NCBI RefSeq assembly: GCF_016433145.1
Contig: NC_058133.1
Location: forward strand, 476,105,058-476,169,057
From: Gracilinanus agilis
Taxonomy: Eukaryota
Length of the DNA stretch: 64,000 nt
Reading direction: 5' to 3'
The translations under genes and the position numbers were made by a program. The notes below the pieces were generated by a model, which had not been told where the DNA came from, searched no databases, and saw only the letters and a program-made list of their open reading frames with translations. Every line of letters starts with the position of its first letter. The first letter of the stretch is position 1. This document shows positions 38,450 through 53,488 of this stretch, one piece after another.

Positions 38450-38610
38450 NNNNNNNNNNNNNNNNNNNNNNNNNNNNNNNNNNNNNNNNNNNNNNNNNNN
38501 NNNNNNNNNNNNNNNNNNNNNNNNNNNNNNNNNNNNNNNNNNNNNNNNNNNNNNNNNNNNNNNNNNNNNNNNNNNNNNNNNNNNNNNNNNNNNNNNNNNN
38601 NNNNNNNNNN
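38450..38610. other. Assembly gap (161 N)
   Basis: Run of n characters. Confidence 1.
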
Positions 38611-44570: not shown

Positions 44571-44746
44571 TTTTTTTTCTTTTAACCCCTTACCTTCTGT
44601 CCTAGAATCAGTACTGGGTATTGGTTCTAAGGCAGAAGAGAGTGGTAAGGGCTAGGCAATGGGGGTTAGGTGTCTGAGGTCAATTTTGAACCCAGGACCT
44701 CCCATTTCTGGGCCTGGTTCTCAATCTGCAAGCCACCCAGCCGCCC
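44571..44746 (-). mobile_element. SINE1
   Basis: T-rich tail and reverse-complement SINE1 body. Confidence 0.8.
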
Positions 44747-44972: not shown

Positions 44973-45347
44973 CACTGATAGCGGAGGGCCCTGGAATCAA
45001 GAAAAGACCCCGGACCTCCAGAGTTTGGGCTCTGTGTGTGTGTCTCTCTCTGTCACTCTCCCCTAACCCATTTCCTTTTCCTGGTGTTGCCTTCCGGCTG
45101 ATCAAAGTGTTATCCCATTCTAGTCATATTCTCACCTAGCAAAGTTCTGGGATCCTGGGAAGCCTAAATTCCAAAGAGCTTGCTGACTACTTGCCTCTTT
45201 CCATTGAAGCCCAAGGCTGGGCTCCAAGAGCAGGTTTGTACTTCAGTGCCTGGGGATGGTGGATTAGGCTCAGCCACCTGCCCTTCTGCCGCGCCTGCGT
45301 GTCTCTTTTCTTCCTCTTCAACAAATTCAGATGTTCAAGTGCAGTTT

Positions 45348-45353
45348 AATAAA
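45348..45353 (+). terminator. Putative BNIPL polyadenylation signal
   Basis: First AATAAA after the BNIPL stop, ~375 nt downstream. Confidence 0.55.
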
Positions 45354-45728
45354 TTCAGTTACGAAAGAGGACTCGGTTTTGTGAAGGGAATCTGCCGGGT
45401 TCCCATCCCCACGACAGTCCCAATCTCTTTGCCTCCTGGTCCTAGCTTCAATGCACGTCTGGTGGGGAAAGGACACCCCGGAGCAGGGGAAGTAGAGACA
45501 AAGAGAGTGGACGTTCTAGGTTTCCCAGCAACGCCTCAGGGGAAGTGTCCCGAGGTGCAGGAGGAGCCCATATCCCCCTCCCCTGGGGCGCTCGCGCCCT
45601 CCCCTCAGTTTAAACGAACCCGGGAGTCGGGATCGAAAAGGGAAGGAGGGAGAAAGAAGCAGAGCCCCTGCCCCTCCCCTCTTCTCCCATTTCTTCACCG
45701 CCAAGGCGCCTTTAAGCCCGTTCTCCCT

Positions 45729-48332
45729 ATGATCCCCACGGGCGGAGCACTGCTGTGGGCCCTCTGGCTGATCCTAGGGGCCCAGGAGGTGGCAGCCAGG
45801 GCCATTGTCCGGAGCCAGGCCAGAGCAGGTTGGGCTGGTGGCAGCGAAGGGGACACCATCCCATCGGGGATCCTGAACAAGGTCTGGCCCAACAGCGTGA
45901 AAAGGGATGAATATGATTTGGTCAGGAAAATGATAAATACGGCGGAAGGGGAGGAAGACTACTCGGCCGCAGCAGATAAACTGGCTGCCCCGGCTGCTGC
46001 CGAGCTCCTCTCTGCCTCCGTGGCCTCAGTACCTGGGAACAGGGAAGTTCAGGGTCAGGAGGAGGACCAGCAGCCTGAGGAGGCTGAGGAGCAGAAGGAA
46101 GACCAAGAAAATGATGATGATCTAGAGCAGGAGGAGAACGAGGACCAGGAGCAAGACTTTGACCAGATAGAGGAGCTAAAGCAGTATTCCGAAGACCCAA
46201 GACAGGATCCGGGTCAAGGGCAGGGAGTGGAGCAGGAACAGAACCAAGAGCAAGGCCAGATGCAGGAAATAAAGGAGGAAGAGCAGCAAGAGCAGGAAAA
46301 GGAGCTTGAGGAACAGAGGCAAGGACCAGGGGAAGAGGGCCAAAGGCACTGGGAGGAGGAAGAGGAGCAGCAGCAAGTGCAGGCACAGCAGGAACAGATG
46401 GAGGAGCAGGAGGAGGTGCAGCCTCAGATTGGGGAGCAGACTGAGGGGCAGGCGGAGGAGCAGGAGCAGACGGAGGAGCAGGAGCAGACGGAGGAGCAGG
46501 AGCAGGCGGAGGAGCAGGAGCAGACGGAGGAGCAGATTGGGGAGCAGAGGGAGGGGCAGGCGGAGGAGCAGGAGCAGACGGAGGAGCAGACTGAGGAGCA
46601 GGAACAGCAGGAACAGGCAGCGCCTCGGCTTCCAGCGCTGGGGCAGGTTCAAAAGCAAGTGCGGGTGCAGCCTCAGATTCAGAAGCCAGAGGAGGAGAAG
46701 CAGGAGAAGACTGAGGAGCAGGAGGAACAGGCACAGCCTCAGCTTCCAGCGCTGGGGCAGATTCAGAAGCAGGCGCTGATGCAGCCTCAGCTTCAGAAGC
46801 AGGAGAGGGAGAAGCTGGAGCAGAAGCAGACTGAGGAGCGGGAGCAGCAGGAAACCGCGCAGCCTCAGGTTCCAAAACTGGGAAAGACTCAGAAGCAGGT
46901 GCGGTTGCAGCCTCATATTCAGAAGCCGGAGGAGACTAAGGAGCAGGAGCAGACTAAGGAGCAGGAGGAGCAGACTAAGGAGCAGGAGGAGAAGGAACAG
47001 GCACAGCCTCAGTTTCCAAAACTGGGGCGGTCGCCGGAGCAGGAACAGGAGCAGACGGAGGAGCAGGAGCAGATGGAGGAGCAGGAGCAGACGGAGGAGC
47101 AGGAGCAGACGGAGGAGCAGGAGCAGACGGAGGAGCGAGAGCAGACGGAGGAGGAGGAGGAGGAGACGGAGGAGCGAGAGCAGACGGAGGAACAGGAGGA
47201 GAAGGAACAGGCACAGCCTATGTTTCCAGCGCTGGGGCATACTGAGGAGCAGGAGCGGGAGCAGACGGAGGAGCAGGAGCAGCAGGAACAGGCACAGCCT
47301 CAGCTTCCAGCGCTGGGGCAGACTGAGGAGCAGGAGCAGGAGCAGGAGCAGATTGAAGAGCAGAAGCAGACTGAGGAGCAGGAGGAGCAGGCACAGCCTC
47401 AGATTCAGATTCGGGCGCTGGAGCAGATTCCCCAGCAGGAGGAGCAGGAGGAGCAGAAGGAGCAGGAGCAGAAGAAGCAGGAGGAGCAGGAGGAGCAGAA
47501 GGAGCAGGAGGAGCAGGAGGAGCAGAAGGAGCAGGAGGAGCAGAAGGAGCAGGAGGAGCAGAAGGAGCAGGAGGAGCAGGAGGAGCAGAAGGAGCAGGAG
47601 GAGCAGAAGGAGCAGGAGGAGCAGGAGGAGCAGGAGGAGCAGGAGGAGCAGAAGGAGCAGAAGGAGCAGAAGGAGCAGAAGAAGCAGGAGGAGCAGGAGG
47701 AGCAGAAGCAGAAGAAGCAGGCAAAGCCTCATATTCAGGAGCAGGAGCAGGAGCAGCAGGCACAGCCCGTGCAGAAGCAGCAGCATGAGGTACAGAAGAA
47801 GAAGCACGTACAGGAGGCAAGGATGGGTCTGGGCCCCGGGCCTAGGAAAAAGAACTTACAAATTTACCGCCGCCTGGGGCTTAAGGCCCTTGAACCGCCA
47901 CCACCTTCCTCAAAACAGCTTTCCAGCCGAAATCGGGCTCGGGCTCTCGCTCGGCCCCGACACACGCCGCTGACGCTGCTAACCTGGGGGCCGTGGCAAT
48001 GTCACTGCGCCGAGGGTACCATGACCCGCGTTCGGGGAGGAAAGATTTTAGGTTTCACTGGAAATCTCCGATCTGGAGCTCTAGGCCGCCTGCACACCCA
48101 GAGCCTGCCCTGCACCTACGCCCGATGCGGCTGTAGCCAGGAGAAGAAAGAATGCCCCTTAGACAACTCCCCGTGCCCCTCCTCCTCTCCCGGCTGCAAG
48201 TACCACTCTTCCCTGTCTCCGTTAGAGAGGCGGGAAAGCTCTGTGAATGACACGGCGTTTTGGAAGCAAGTCCGAGAGGGGCTGGAAGAAGTTTGGGTTG
48301 GACTCCAGACGCTAGTGACGAGAAAAGGGTGA
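45729..48332 (+). CDS. MENT: C1orf56/MENT orthologue, 867 aa, with a large Glu/Gln-rich repeat region
   Basis: Signal-peptide-like MIPTGGALLWALWLILG; ADKLAAPAAAELLSASV; C-terminal WGPWQCHC..GTM..R.G...LR.GAL..L....PCTY..C.C...KECPLD...FWKQVREGLEEVW, all matching human C1orf56 as recalled; syntenic position. Confidence 0.93.
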   Translation: MIPTGGALLWALWLILGAQEVAARAIVRSQARAGWAGGSEGDTIPSGILNKVWPNSVKRDEYDLVRKMINTAEGEEDYSAAADKLAAPAAAELLSASVASVPGNREVQGQEEDQQPEEAEEQKEDQENDDDLEQEENEDQEQDFDQIEELKQYSEDPRQDPGQGQGVEQEQNQEQGQMQEIKEEEQQEQEKELEEQRQGPGEEGQRHWEEEEEQQQVQAQQEQMEEQEEVQPQIGEQTEGQAEEQEQTEEQEQTEEQEQAEEQEQTEEQIGEQREGQAEEQEQTEEQTEEQEQQEQAAPRLPALGQVQKQVRVQPQIQKPEEEKQEKTEEQEEQAQPQLPALGQIQKQALMQPQLQKQEREKLEQKQTEEREQQETAQPQVPKLGKTQKQVRLQPHIQKPEETKEQEQTKEQEEQTKEQEEKEQAQPQFPKLGRSPEQEQEQTEEQEQMEEQEQTEEQEQTEEQEQTEEREQTEEEEEETEEREQTEEQEEKEQAQPMFPALGHTEEQEREQTEEQEQQEQAQPQLPALGQTEEQEQEQEQIEEQKQTEEQEEQAQPQIQIRALEQIPQQEEQEEQKEQEQKKQEEQEEQKEQEEQEEQKEQEEQKEQEEQKEQEEQEEQKEQEEQKEQEEQEEQEEQEEQKEQKEQKEQKKQEEQEEQKQKKQAKPHIQEQEQEQQAQPVQKQQHEVQKKKHVQEARMGLGPGPRKKNLQIYRRLGLKALEPPPPSSKQLSSRNRARALARPRHTPLTLLTWGPWQCHCAEGTMTRVRGGKILGFTGNLRSGALGRLHTQSLPCTYARCGCSQEKKECPLDNSPCPSSSPGCKYHSSLSPLERRESSVNDTAFWKQVREGLEEVWVGLQTLVTRKG
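46042..47820 (+). repeat. Coding tandem repeat array (GAG/CAG/AAG-rich)
   Basis: 18-nt GAGGAGCAGGAGCAGACG units, seven longer AQPQLPALGQ-type units, and 18/27-nt EEQKEQ(EEQ) units. Confidence 0.97.
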
Positions 48333-48555
48333 GTATCAGGGAAGAAGGAACGAGTGAGGCATTTACTCTTAAGCACTTGCTACACGCCAAGCACTGGGGA
48401 CGCAAACAGAAAAGAGAACCCCTACTCTAATGATTTAGAGTTAGAAATGATCTGATCCCTGGTTATTGAGGGTGGGGTTTTTGTTTGTTTGTTTGTTTTT
48501 TAATCGGTAGTTGATTTAGCATCCCGTGCCAGATAGCCCTTGAAATCAGCCTAAG

Positions 48556-48760
48556 GGGTAGTAGCTAGGTGGCTCAGTGGATAGAGCCAGGCCTAGAGAT
48601 CGGAGGTCCTGGACTCAAATCTGCCCCGTGTGAACCAGAGGTCAGTCACTTAACTGCCATCACCTAGCCCTTACTGCCCTTCTCCCTTGGAACCAATTCT
48701 CTGTATGAATTCTAAGACAGAGGGTGAGAGGAAGAAAGAAAGAAGAAAAGAAAGAAAGAA
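48556..48760 (+). mobile_element. SINE1 (older, diverged)
   Basis: gctaggtggctcagtggatagagcc head and AAAG-rich tail. Confidence 0.75.
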
Positions 48761-50261
48761 AAATTAGATACCGACTGTAATAATTTTAAAATTTTATTTT
48801 CTTAACCAATGACATCCAATAACAATAATTTCTGACCAAATTATTGTTAAGTGGTCTTTGACCAGTCTTTGTTGGTCATCATTTTGATTATCCACAATTT
48901 CTGGGACTGTACAAAGCAATCATTGTACAGACTGATCTTAAGTAACGCTGATAATTATTAGATGTGGATGAATCCATGATTTATCAGTAAGTATTGGCCA
49001 ATGGCCAGCAATTGGCTAGAGCAGCTTAGACAGCACCTATTGATTAGGTAATGATTTATTTTATACAATCTAGTATAGTTACTTTAATTGACGCATTGGA
49101 TGATTTTCCATAGGAATAGAACCAGGCAAACAGGATATAATCTGGTGTTACTGTCAGTTTCTATCTCTCCCTTGATGGGTCTCTTACATAACTGTATCAA
49201 AGTCCAAGGAGAGTACAGATTAACGCATAAAACAAGCAAGTGCTCTCACATTCTAGGAGAGTTGGAAAATCTCCAAGCCTTGTATTTTCCCCACTAATTA
49301 AGCCCAAGACTTTATTTTGTAAGGTGGTTGTGGGTATTGCTGTAATTAAGGAGGGCAGCAGCAATAGGATGATGAGTGGAGGAAAATCAGGGGCAAAGGG
49401 ATAATATACAAATGTGTTTGTAATTTCCCCTTTTTCTTCCCTACCTTAGATAAAGAGAAAAATCAGAAGTGATGGCCACCCCATGTCCAGCCCCAGAGGA
49501 TGAGGAAGGGGTGTCAGCATTCTAATCTCTTTCCCCCTTCTACCTCTAACTTTCCACATCCTATAGACAACTTTCATAAAGCAGTAAAGTCTATTCATAA
49601 AAACAAAACAAAACAAAACAGAACTTTTAATTTTTTATCTCATTGAAAGGGTGGTTGGGCCTAGAAGAGGACAGAGACATACTTCCCTAGAAAAGAATCA
49701 AGAGTTTCTATAGCTTCTTATCCCTTGTTTCCTAACTCCCAAGTTATTCCCTATAGAATGAAATAATGTTACTTATTTTCTCCCTTTTTTCTGCAATGAG
49801 TAAAAATTCTGACAAGAGTAGCTTCTGGGTAAGAAAAATCAATTTCTTGATCAGTCTAGCAATAACCAATAAATGAATTGGTTCATGATCTCTTTCAGTG
49901 ATCAAATTCATTCAGCATCCCCTGAGTCATTAAATATAATTTTGGAAGCTCATTATTCAGCTCTCCCTTACACAGCCCCCAGGACATCTCTGGTGGATAC
50001 CTGAGAAGATGAGTTAATATTTTCCAGGCCCTCCCAGATACCCTCATGATGATGGGGAAAATCACATGCCTATCACAGAATTCCAACATCCCTGCTGATC
50101 TAGATGAAGAAATCAAGTTAGGCCTGGCCAAGACTGACTTTCCCCCTATTCATCCTGTGGGGAACACTGATATCCCCTCTATCCCCACCCAGGACATTTT
50201 TGGCCAAAATGAGTTTTTATTTACTAGACAAGATGAAATTTATATTCTCAATCTTAACTAA

Positions 50262-50432
50262 AGGAGCTTAAGGAGGAAATAGATAGTAAAACTATAGTAG
50301 TAGGGGACCTCAACCTTCTGCTCTCAGAACTAGATAAATCTAACCAAAAAATAAGAAAGAAGTGAATAAAATTTTAGAAAAGTTAATAGACATCTGGATA
50401 AAATTTAATAGGGATAAAAGGAATATACCTTC
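50262..50432 (+). mobile_element. Internal L1 ORF2 endonuclease fragment
   Basis: Reads ELKEEIDSKTIVVGDLNLLLSELDKSNQKI, the L1 EN GDFN-motif region. Confidence 0.75.
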
Positions 50433-50914
50433 TTATATTCTAGGTCTTAATTACCTCAATTCTAGAAGCTGCTTTAGGGCAGGGAATTTGAGAGCATTCC
50501 TAGGATTCTCAGGACAAAGGAATGAGGGAAAAGACTTGAAAAATATATTACAGAGCTCTATCAAAAATTTAAAAATGCATTATTAAGAATAAATCTTCTC
50601 ATTTTCAAGCTAGTTTTTTAAATAGAAGAATCTAGTTCAATCTAAAGTCAAAGAAAGGAAAAAAATAGAAAACAGGAGAGTCAAGGAATCATGGCCATCC
50701 TTTCCCCTGACTCCATTCTGTCTAGCCCTTCTCTAAGATAGGAGGTGCCCAATTTGACTTGTTCCTTACCCTCCCCTAAGTATACTCAATGTAAACCAAG
50801 AGCCTCCTAATCCCACCCACCCAGGTACAATATTCCCTCACCTCCCCAACTCCCCATCCCCATAGACCAGTCCCCTAAAAAATCCATCTGAAACATTTTG
50901 CTGGAGAATTTTTT

Positions 50915-50941
50915 TTTATTTGAAAAAATGTATTTAATAAA
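50915..50941. terminator. Overlapping polyadenylation signals on both strands
   Basis: Minus-strand AATAAA 50915-50920 and ATTAAA 50933-50938; plus-strand AATAAA 50936-50941. Confidence 0.55.
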
Positions 50942-53488
50942 GTCTGGCAGTTTTTTTTTTGTTTTTTGTTTTTTTGATAAATTAAGACTCTCAAACCCAC
51001 CCCAATCACTTTTGGAAGTTGGTAGAAGTGATGGGGGAGGCATAAGTAACATCAAGTGAGTTCCATAAAAGGGAAGGCCAGTGGTAAGAGAGCTCAAAAG
51101 GAAAGAAAAAAAGGAGTGTGGCCCAAGACTAGAGATAAAACCCAACAGTGTTCACAGATCAAACTGACTAGACAGTACCTCACACCTTCCATAACCAAGT
51201 TCAGTTTTCAGGCAGAGATTCCTAGTTTGTACTCAGCTTTCCAGATAGGAATCTAGGCTAGTCCTCAAAACAACCAGAAAGATGAGCCAAGTGTGAGCTA
51301 GGTAATTATTGTGCCATATCCACCACAGATCTAAAGAGATCTTTAAAAAAGCAGGAATAGCAATTTTGAAAAAATCAAGGGCCTCTAGACAGAATATATA
51401 CAGAGGCAAAGCACTTAGAAGATGGAGAAAGCCTGATCTCAGTTTTTCGCTTGGTGCTGCCTCCTTCCTGCCGGGGGTGACTGAAGATAACTCATTGCCT
51501 ACTCTCCCTTGGTTGAGTGGAGGGCAGGGTGTTAGGTTTGGCTTCTAATGCCTTACTCAGTCTTGTACATCTCTACCCTTTTAGAAAAGAAATAAAGCAG
51601 AAATACCAGAGAATGATTGGAGGTATCAAGACACCCATCACTTTGTTCTTTCACACAACACTGGCCCCTTTAGTCAGGCAGGGGGTTTCTCAGAATTCAT
51701 CCCAAGCCTTACCTGGGTCTGGTATTGCACAAAATGAGAGAAACATATGGAGTTTTCGTTACTGCATTGACCCTTCCCATCCCAGTACTCCACTAAGGTC
51801 TTAGCCCTATGGGACCCTCTTCCAATTAGCAAGAATGACTATCACACAAACATACACCTATCACAGAAACATTAGACACACATATATAGTAAAATAAAGT
51901 TGCATGGCTTGGAGAGGTGTAGAATTTTTGCTAACCTTGGCTACGAGGGATCCTAAGTCTATCCACAGCCCAGCTGTAGAGACTCTAAGATGGGCCAGAA
52001 CTTGAGGAAGAAAATCACTTGGGAAAAAGAAAACACATCCTCAAACCTCAAATCTAATAGGATTTAAAATCCAAACAGAACCCTGCTCCCAACCAACCAC
52101 ATTTGTAGTGAGCTTTGTCCCTACAAATTCAAAGATAGCACACTCTCTCTCTCTCTCTCTCTCCCAGGATGGTCAGGAGGTCCTCCCTGAGGTATAACTT
52201 CCCTCTGTAGTCCCAGGTCCCACCTCCTTTTCCATTCTCTCCCTCACCTGTGCCAGCAGGGGAGGTAAATGATCCTGAGGATTTGACAGAGGGAAAAATG
52301 TCTAGCACATAGGTGGTTTCTCCCAATTCCCAACTCCAACGTAGACGTAATGGGGATTGTGAAGGTTCCTAGCATAGATGGGGAGTAATTAACAGAACTG
52401 GTCTTAAATTAACATTTTAATTAAAAAAAGGTTGGGGGTGGAGGGGAGAAGAGATAATTGGTGGGGAGATACTAATGCTACAGAAACCAGGGTTAAAGGT
52501 CTGTTAGAAGACCTAGGTATTCAGAGACAGATGCTGAAATGCTGTGAGCTGAGGAGTTGGAGTCCAAAGAGGGAAAATGAGAGAAGTAGGTGGTTGTGTC
52601 CTCCCCAGTCCCTTGACTGAAATTTTCTTCATTTCAGGAAGGGAGCTGGAGAGGATGTGGAGGTAGGTAGCAATCAACAAAGCCAGGTTCAGCTTTGGCA
52701 ATGCAACCTCATCTACCCCATGAAGAAAAAAAAAGTTAGGGGTCCAAGTTAAAGAGCAGCCCAGTGCCCAGACCATCATTAAGGAACCTAGACTTTACCC
52801 TTGGTTCCTCCCAGGGGTGGGAGAAGGTATAAGGGCTCCTATCTCAGGTCAGTTGGGTATCTAAGGCTAGATCTGGCTAGCCAGTGGTCATTTGGTCAGT
52901 CCTGCTGCCTTGACCCCATCTCCAGGAGGGGCTTGACCAGGGTAGTAGAGTGGGGAGTCCAGTCTCCCAAGCCCTTCTAGACACTGACAGGTAGGGAAGA
53001 CAGAGGGGAAGATCCTGGGGTCATTGGTTCAGGAAAGGACAGCATTTCTTCTTAGCTGAGCACAGGACTGGGAACTCCAAGATGGCAAAACCTGAGTAGG
53101 AAAAGAGTGGAATTTCTGTCAGGCTTAAAGTACTTGATTAAGGCCCAAGGAAGAAGGGGCTACTCAAGAAAAACTGTCATTGTGGCTATTTTAAACCTAG
53201 TGGAGCTCAATGAATATCTGAATTGAAGAACTATACATCTCTGAATATTCTGCTTTCTGAATTTCTGCTTCTTTCAGTCTCCATATTGCTGTCACTTGCA
53301 GATATTTCTTTTAATCACTGCTCTAGCTCTCTGCTGGACTTCTTTAACTGTGGGACTTCCCTCACTTTTGTTCCTCTCTTCTATTAATTTCCAGCCTGGC
53401 CCAGAAAAATCAGGACTGAAAAGCAAGAGGATAGAGTGAGTGATGGGGGCAGGGTTTGTTTTTCCCTCACTCACCATCTCCCTTAGAG

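Follow-up and report, generated by a model that had tools for sequence, protein, structure and literature searches.

A long glutamate- and glutamine-rich linker in the MENT/C1orf56 orthologue of Gracilinanus agilis

The question raised by this locus is how an open reading frame (ORF) of Gracilinanus agilis came to encode 867 amino acids (aa), when the placental orthologues that we retrieved have 322–360 aa. The ORF runs from an ATG at 45729 to a TGA at 48330–48332 on the plus strand of the window, by which we mean the whole stretch of 64,000 nucleotides (nt) of contig NC_058133.1 that was analysed; all positions are window positions. It forms coding exon 1 of MENT/C1orf56 (45729..48332, plus strand, 867 codons plus TGA), and its splice donor, G|GTGAGT, overlaps the stop codon. 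An earlier note on this DNA had named the gene, described its layout and put its product at about 2.5 times the human length, and the retrieved placental lengths agree with that estimate.

Identity of the gene and its reading frame

The layout given in the earlier note, with a signal-like start, an AAPAAAELL block, a long stretch of E, Q, K and T codons and a Cys-rich end, was confirmed by the ORF, its composition and the Pfam search. The C-terminal 141 aa (aa 727–867, 47907..48328, plus strand) hold eight Cys residues and matched the Pfam family PMSI1 (PF15322) with an E value of 1.9e-30 and 106.7 bits against a curated cut-off of 29.6. The domain queried alone against the PMSI1 hidden Markov model gave 116.8 bits. 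PMSI1, ‘protein missing in infertile sperm 1’, is the C1orf56/MENT family. The Pfam scan of the whole 867-aa protein at E ≤ 1 returned no other family and no involucrin or related repeat. The C-domain has a W-x-x-W-x-C-x-C...M-x-R-x-R core followed by an amphipathic helix (aa 840–865), and all 13 columns that were invariant among 23 vertebrate sequences are present in it, covering two Trp, six Cys and the M-x-R-x-R strand, together with one nearly invariant Cys. Its identity to the MENT-named proteins of tammar and sugar glider was 53–54%, and the wombat protein matched too.

At the other end, aa 1–24 (45729..45800, plus strand) are hydrophobic and resemble a signal peptide. This was judged from hydrophobicity and from the helix at aa 6–19 in the AlphaFold2 (AF2) model. 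The M-I-P-T-G start is kept in four of four marsupials, and the product is probably secreted. LAAPAAAELL, which anchors the mammalian members of the family on the N-terminal side, lies at aa 85–94 (45981..46010, plus strand); the [AG]PAAAELL motif was invariant in the four marsupial proteins and also occurred in placental sequences.

The gene order pointed to the same identity. Exons of CDC42SE1 that encode its N-terminal M-S-E-F-W-H-K-L-G-C-C and its CRIB motif were located at ~54069 and ~54636 (~54.0–54.7 kb) on the minus strand, tail-to-tail with MENT. The wombat and tammar loci, which were compared by gene order only, show a BNIP2/CRAL_TRIO (BNIPL-like) gene, then MENT, then a minus-strand gene of 79–80 aa, followed in tammar by an MLLT11-like gene. 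This marsupial order matches the human 1q21.3 order, BNIPL-C1orf56-CDC42SE1-MLLT11. Neighbourhood support within the window is that of the CDC42SE1 side, and the BNIPL side was seen in the wombat and tammar loci only. The window gene is an intact marsupial orthologue of MENT/C1orf56, its orthology supported by the synteny with CDC42SE1, so the identity proposed earlier stands on both the PMSI1 match and the gene order. The exact 867-aa product was absent from the 15-billion-sequence protein collection that was searched.

The reading frame is intact across the repeat. Between 46030 and 47810 the coding frame has no stop in 593 codons, and the other two plus-strand frames have 5 and 19. In 2000 dinucleotide-preserving shuffles the mean number of stops was 9.75, and none of the 2000 was stop-free. 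About 380 GAG, CAG and AAG codons each lie one first-position change from TAG, and none has turned into a stop. Long ORFs also occur on several frames and on the opposite strand because the region contains only 6.6% T. The Leu-rich and Arg/Ser-rich ones were therefore rejected as by-products of a T-poor purine repeat, and eight further long ORFs in the window had no Pfam match. The coding strand of 46030–47810 is 75% purine over 1.8 kb, with GC skew up to 0.48 and AT skew up to 0.83; such a polypurine tract could form unusual DNA structures or R-loops, and it carries many GAR-type exonic enhancer motifs.

The linker and its relatives in other vertebrates

We defined the linker as the span between the N-terminal motif and the start of the C-domain. 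In the window protein it reaches from LAAPAAAELL to W-G-P-W-Q-C-H-C and comprises 658 aa, with 31% Glu/Asp, 27% Gln and a net charge of −134. Within aa 101–700 the composition was E 33%, Q 29%, K 8% and T 4%, giving a net charge of −145; this stretch of ~600 aa holds 174 Q and 45 K. Codon use is nearly monotone, with GAG outnumbering GAA by 174 to 22 among the 196 Glu codons and CAG outnumbering CAA by 163 to 11 among the 174 Gln codons, which fits slippage at the DNA level.

The first ~115 aa of the acidic stretch (aa 101–215, 46029..46373, plus strand, net charge −38) form a non-repetitive E/Q/D block that is common to other marsupials; about aa 101–190 are collinear with tammar, wombat and sugar glider. 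Beyond it, Tandem Repeats Finder (TRF) detected nested plus-strand arrays with periods of 9, 18, 81, 105, 108, 114 and 126 bp, each divisible by three. A-[QAK]-P occurs nine times as an anchor and marks off units of 13–110 aa, with EEQEQT runs and an EEQ/KEQ array between the anchors. An 18-bp array of EEQEQT type inside a 108-bp higher-order duplication (46387..46602, 87% match) is followed by three units of 114, 126 and 144 bp (46617..47000, 38–48 aa) that start with AQPQ-x-P-x-LG and carry QKQVR-x-QP-x-IQK. Next come a second 18-bp EEQEQT array (47041..47206), two units of 81 and 99 bp in which AQP-x-FPALG precedes an EEQ run (47211..47390) and, last, an array of about 30 copies of a 9-bp EEQ/KEQ unit (47434..47705, 90% match), the length of which is unconfirmed by short-read contigs.

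Among the sampled vertebrates, E/Q-rich linkers of 430, 389 and 255 aa were found in tammar, wombat and sugar glider, respectively. The linker of placental mammals has ~100–130 aa with 20–26% S/T and 2–5% Q, and the pangolin linker measured between the same two anchors has 98 aa. The window linker is thus about six times the placental length, and the comparison agrees with the earlier note that a long polyacidic linker stands where placental proteins have a Ser/Thr/Pro-rich one. The echidna linker is Pro-rich and only 42 aa long. In reptile, amphibian and shark MENT the regions before the C-domain are short or S/T/P/A-rich, and in two caecilians the same region has grown to more than 350 aa by P/S repeats. 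The four marsupial linkers contain 17–31% E+D and 15–27% Q, levels that occurred only in marsupials among the sampled species. Their net charge is −20 to −40 in the other marsupials versus −134 here, so the window copy is both the longest and the most acidic.

The linker is not particular to this genome. The earlier note had named similar E/Q linkers in most non-eutherian orthologues as evidence against its reading. The data come close to this, since three of three other marsupials have such linkers, although the monotreme, sauropsid, amphibian and shark sequences lack them. The four marsupial proteins are collinear over their first ~190 aa, including ~90 aa of the acidic linker. Because all four have the linker and share this start, the E/Q linker is older than the split of the window lineage from the Australian diprotodontians. 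The dominant peptide period varies, being 6/18 aa in the window protein, 12 aa in tammar and, in wombat, 7/14/21 aa; the amplifications are accordingly lineage-specific. A QKQV-x-x-QP-x-IQ motif is common to the window and tammar proteins and repeated in both. Judged from these sequences, the E/Q linker is marsupial-wide among the sampled species and has been amplified lineage by lineage.

The remainder of the protein keeps the family pattern. Placental MENT (squirrel 339–342 aa, shrew 358 aa) shares the signal peptide, [AG]PAAAELL, a linker that begins acidic, the Cys-rich C-domain (W-G-P-W-x-C-H-C) and its terminal amphipathic helix, the two exons and the CDC42SE1 neighbour. It differs in its short Ser/Thr/Pro-rich, Q-poor linker and in the basic tail I-[KD]-R-N-[QR]-R, which is present there and absent here. 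The Australian marsupial proteins (tammar XP_072500840, wombat XP_027717576, sugar glider XP_068946169/70) share the E/Q linker with its first ~90 acidic residues, a C-domain that is 50–60% identical, and matching gene neighbours. They differ in the amplified units, with QPHIQAQKQVKG, of 12 aa, in tammar and P/Q units of 7/14 aa in wombat, and in retaining the K-I-K-R-N-Q-R tail (seen in tammar and wombat).

Two annotation points were observed alongside this comparison. The repeat-rich linkers have led to automated misnaming of MENT, with wombat MENT called ‘transcription factor SPT20 homolog’ because of its Q-rich repeat, and caecilian MENT called ‘methyl-CpG-binding domain protein 6’ and ‘proline-rich protein 36-like’. 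In addition, no stop interrupts the MENT frame in the 183 codons that precede the ATG (45180–45728), and their translation resembles the extra N-terminal sequence of the models for tammar and sugar glider (sharing S-P-Q-F-K-R-T-R-E-S-G, for example). The upstream Met with which these NCBI models begin aligns with Thr (ACG) in the window; the extensions are therefore probably conserved 5′ untranslated region (UTR) or promoter read as protein. Automated models of other marsupials thus begin at an upstream ATG that is absent here.

Growth of the repeat and its likely role

The C-domain was modelled with AF2 from a 23-vertebrate alignment, which gave a small three-strand core and a long terminal helix at a mean predicted local distance difference test (pLDDT) score of 68.6. 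A Foldseek search of the PDB with this model returned almost only chains that contain thrombospondin type 1 repeats (TSRs), namely C6/C8/C9, semaphorin-5A, F-spondin, TSP-1, properdin, BAI1 and TRAP, all at E values of 0.2–2. When a C-domain profile was compared with PDB sequences, the TSRs of CSP, TRAP and TSP-1 ranked first (E 0.015–1.9). Two of the 23 orthologues matched Pfam TSP1_spondin at 0.0046; the window protein gave no match to it. TSR domains (TSP-1, F-spondin, semaphorin-5A, complement C6–C9, Plasmodium CSP/TRAP) resemble the C-domain in a Trp pair followed by Cys, an R-x-R strand and the three-strand layered model. They differ in Cys spacing, in the O-fucosylation motif C-x-x-S/T-C-x-x-G, which is absent here, and in the long C-terminal helix, which is added here, and all the TSR scores fall short of significance. 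Human C1orf56 carries a TSP1 profile, is located on the sperm head and has sialyl-Lewis-x and the zona pellucida as binding partners; an antibody against it inhibits sperm–zona binding (PMC8329450). The glycan and proteoglycan binding of TSRs fits the reported sialyl-Lewis-x binding. MENT is also listed among circulating plasma proteins (PMC12074732). In the literature searched, PMC8329450 was the only functional work found on MENT/C1orf56, and no paper joining C1orf56 with opossum, marsupial or wallaby was found among the best literature matches.

For the whole protein, AF2 with a four-sequence alignment modelled the E/Q/K arrays as helices and the Pro-containing units as coil (mean pLDDT 50.7). 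The helix predicted at aa 570–677 reached a pLDDT of ~93. It contains 48 E versus 18 K, and its i+3/i+4 pairs comprise 34 of opposite charge and 49 of like charge. Since E exceeds K and like-charge pairs outnumber opposite-charge pairs, a stable single helix of ER/K type is doubtful. ER/K single alpha-helix spacers, trichohyalin and involucrin resemble the linker in their long E/Q/K low-complexity repeats, predicted isolated helices and growth by tandem duplication. They differ in that there is no sequence homology and that in the window protein acidic residues far exceed basic ones and the setting is extracellular.

Selection was assessed between paralogous repeat units, which differed by 44, 30 and 27 changes at codon positions 1, 2 and 3, with a pooled ratio of nonsynonymous to synonymous differences (pN/pS) of ~0.9. 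The repeat copies diverge almost neutrally, and no constraint on residue identity is visible. The reading frame is protected. In-frame insertions and deletions are the expected outcome here because all slippage units are multiples of three. The argument of the earlier note from frame survival to selection therefore stands for the frame, with no stop where 9.75 are expected, but not for the repeat residues, given their pN/pS.

We consider it probable, at about 0.6, that the locus is a marsupial MENT with a tolerated, extended polyanionic spacer ahead of a TSR-like binding domain, grown by in-frame slippage. The protein would be secreted or bound to the sperm surface. Its linker would be the evolutionarily free part of the family, and the secretion signal, the N-terminal motif and the TSR-like C-domain the constrained parts. 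That the linker has only 42 aa in echidna but 658 aa here, and switched to poly-Glu/Gln in marsupials, points to such a division. The linker would have turned Glu/Gln-rich in the common ancestor of the sampled marsupials and then lengthened further in this lineage, as GAG/CAG-rich units of 9–144 bp multiplied by replication slippage and unequal exchange. Repeat residues would drift near-neutrally in an array that is polymorphic in length and changes in frame. Nonsense mutations would be removed, because the C-terminal binding domain must stay joined to the secreted N-terminus. The product may form helical rods with proline-containing hinges, a strongly polyanionic spacer that would distance the binding domain from the N-terminal end and whose exact length and sequence would be of little consequence.

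An adaptive reproductive role is possible, and the explanation built on it survives best among the alternatives, although we regard it as unlikely. It holds that MENT is a sperm-surface or acrosomal protein whose linker expanded under sexual selection or sperm–egg coevolution, serving as a tether, a Ca2+-binding or hydrated coat, or an adhesive. The zona-binding role of human C1orf56 on the sperm surface (PMC8329450) favours it and lends support to the link to reproduction that the earlier note had ventured, but nothing ties the repeat to the sperm pairing suggested there. Linker length and chemistry also shift fast and independently in each sampled marsupial lineage, as those of reproductive proteins often do, the frame has been preserved strictly, and the net charge lies far past that of the other marsupials. 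However, the RNA runs carry no tissue information, and the pN/pS between copies and the length polymorphism fit drift equally well. The expansion of the same linker by P/S-rich repeats in caecilians suggests general tolerance rather than a specific need. More doubtful still is the fuller version, in which a remodelled sperm-surface or acrosomal MENT carries a long, partly helical polyanionic rod whose length would be tuned by sexual selection or coevolution with the egg coat (zona reach, Ca2+ buffering, sperm–sperm adhesion), the didelphid-type copy being the extreme.

Read support, transcript and flanking features

The reads came from one study of the source organism; runs of other organisms that share GAG/CAG words (5–9%) were set aside. 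Run X23 behaves as whole-genome DNA at ~25x from another individual or haplotype, and X24–X26 behave as small RNA-sequencing runs that are apparently 3′-biased. The X23 contigs reproduced 45301–47313 and 47769–48469 at the depth of the flanks. Across 6 kb they departed from the assembly at seven single bases and by an insertion of 9 bp, in frame, after 46956; by eye, Arg360 becomes Lys through the difference at 46807, and the one at 48050 is synonymous. The contigs break across 47318–47768 and thus leave the length of the 450-bp 9-mer array unverified. RNA contigs covered 47876–48328 and, within the repeat, 47227 to ~47440, i.e., parts of the final ~1.1 kb of the ORF, and no joint skipping the repeat occurred in the contigs of X24–X26. 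A ‘skips 294’ joint in DNA and a ‘goes back 563’ joint in RNA were rejected as deletions, being mis-placements of the repeat with array letters between the sides. An X25 RNA contig at 46493–46629 (depth 45) is not MENT expression; it continues into unrelated sequence and belongs to another GAG/CAG-rich gene.

It is improbable that an assembly artefact accounts for part of the extreme length, or that the repeat lies outside the mature mRNA or protein through an internal start or splicing. The break in the DNA contigs would agree with this explanation, as would the absence of RNA contigs from the 5′ 1.5 kb of the ORF. However, the independent DNA contigs match the assembly on both sides of the break bar a few bases and the one insertion, and the protein without the 9-mer array would still have ~717 aa. 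RNA contigs lie inside the repeat, the low T content leaves no polypyrimidine acceptor tracts, the frame has none of the stops expected by chance, and the homologous linker belongs to the coding sequence in the gene models of three other marsupials. A transglutaminase-substrate role is less likely than a reproductive one, and cross-linking of the Q/K-rich repeats into a coat or coagulum, by analogy with involucrin, trichohyalin and seminal clotting proteins, is the least probable explanation, being favoured by the Q and K counts of the linker but opposed by the lack of any involucrin or related repeat in the Pfam scan, the origin of the repeats by GAG/CAG slippage within a pre-existing MENT linker and the heavy excess of E over K.

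Several results weigh against a tolerated spacer ahead of a TSR-like domain. The length of the array at 47318–47768 is that of the assembly alone, and X24–X26 gave no RNA contig over 45301–46500 and hence no proof of a full-length transcript. The likeness of the C-domain to TSRs is weakly supported (Foldseek matches at E ≥ 0.2, profile matches at E 0.015–1.9, no match to Pfam TSP_1), and AF2 over-predicts long helices in E/K-rich low-complexity sequence. Near-neutral drift is also compatible with selection on length, charge or composition, as most changes stay within E/Q/K.

At the 3′ end of the ORF an RNA junction, 48328|49450 with GT...AG ends, defines an intron of 1121 nt (48329..49449, plus strand), which is spliced in X25 and X26 and has at least its 5′ part retained in X24 and in some X25 and X26 contigs. 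Exon 2 comprises at least 103 nt (49450..49552, plus strand). Because the junction reads GG|A followed by TAA (49451–49453), spliced and unspliced RNA encode the same 867-aa protein ending in T-R-K-G. The window gene has lost the basic tail with which MENT of other therians ends (K-I-K-R-N-Q-R or I-D-R-N-R-R), and the sequence on either side of the junction agrees with that of independent DNA and RNA contigs. The K-I-K-R-N-Q-R tail was sought downstream by regular expression and tblastn and was not found. The phase at the end of exon 1 is 2, and in another frame exon 2 still encodes I-K-R, the start of the ancestral tail.

MENT/C1orf56 is a poorly understood family, and the marsupial linkers offer a natural length series for the effect of spacer length and charge on gamete binding. 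The long-linker models of other marsupials are public yet uncommented, and the window copy is a further variant of a known family.

In the flanks, a strongly expressed block at 50325–51300 is probably the 3′ UTR of CDC42SE1. Word depths of 10^4–10^5 in the DNA and RNA runs at 44575–44711, 48563–48700 and 50100–50500 mark interspersed repeats, at which the contigs break; the second, within the MENT intron, resembles a tRNA-derived short interspersed nuclear element. A run of 161 N lies at 38450–38610.

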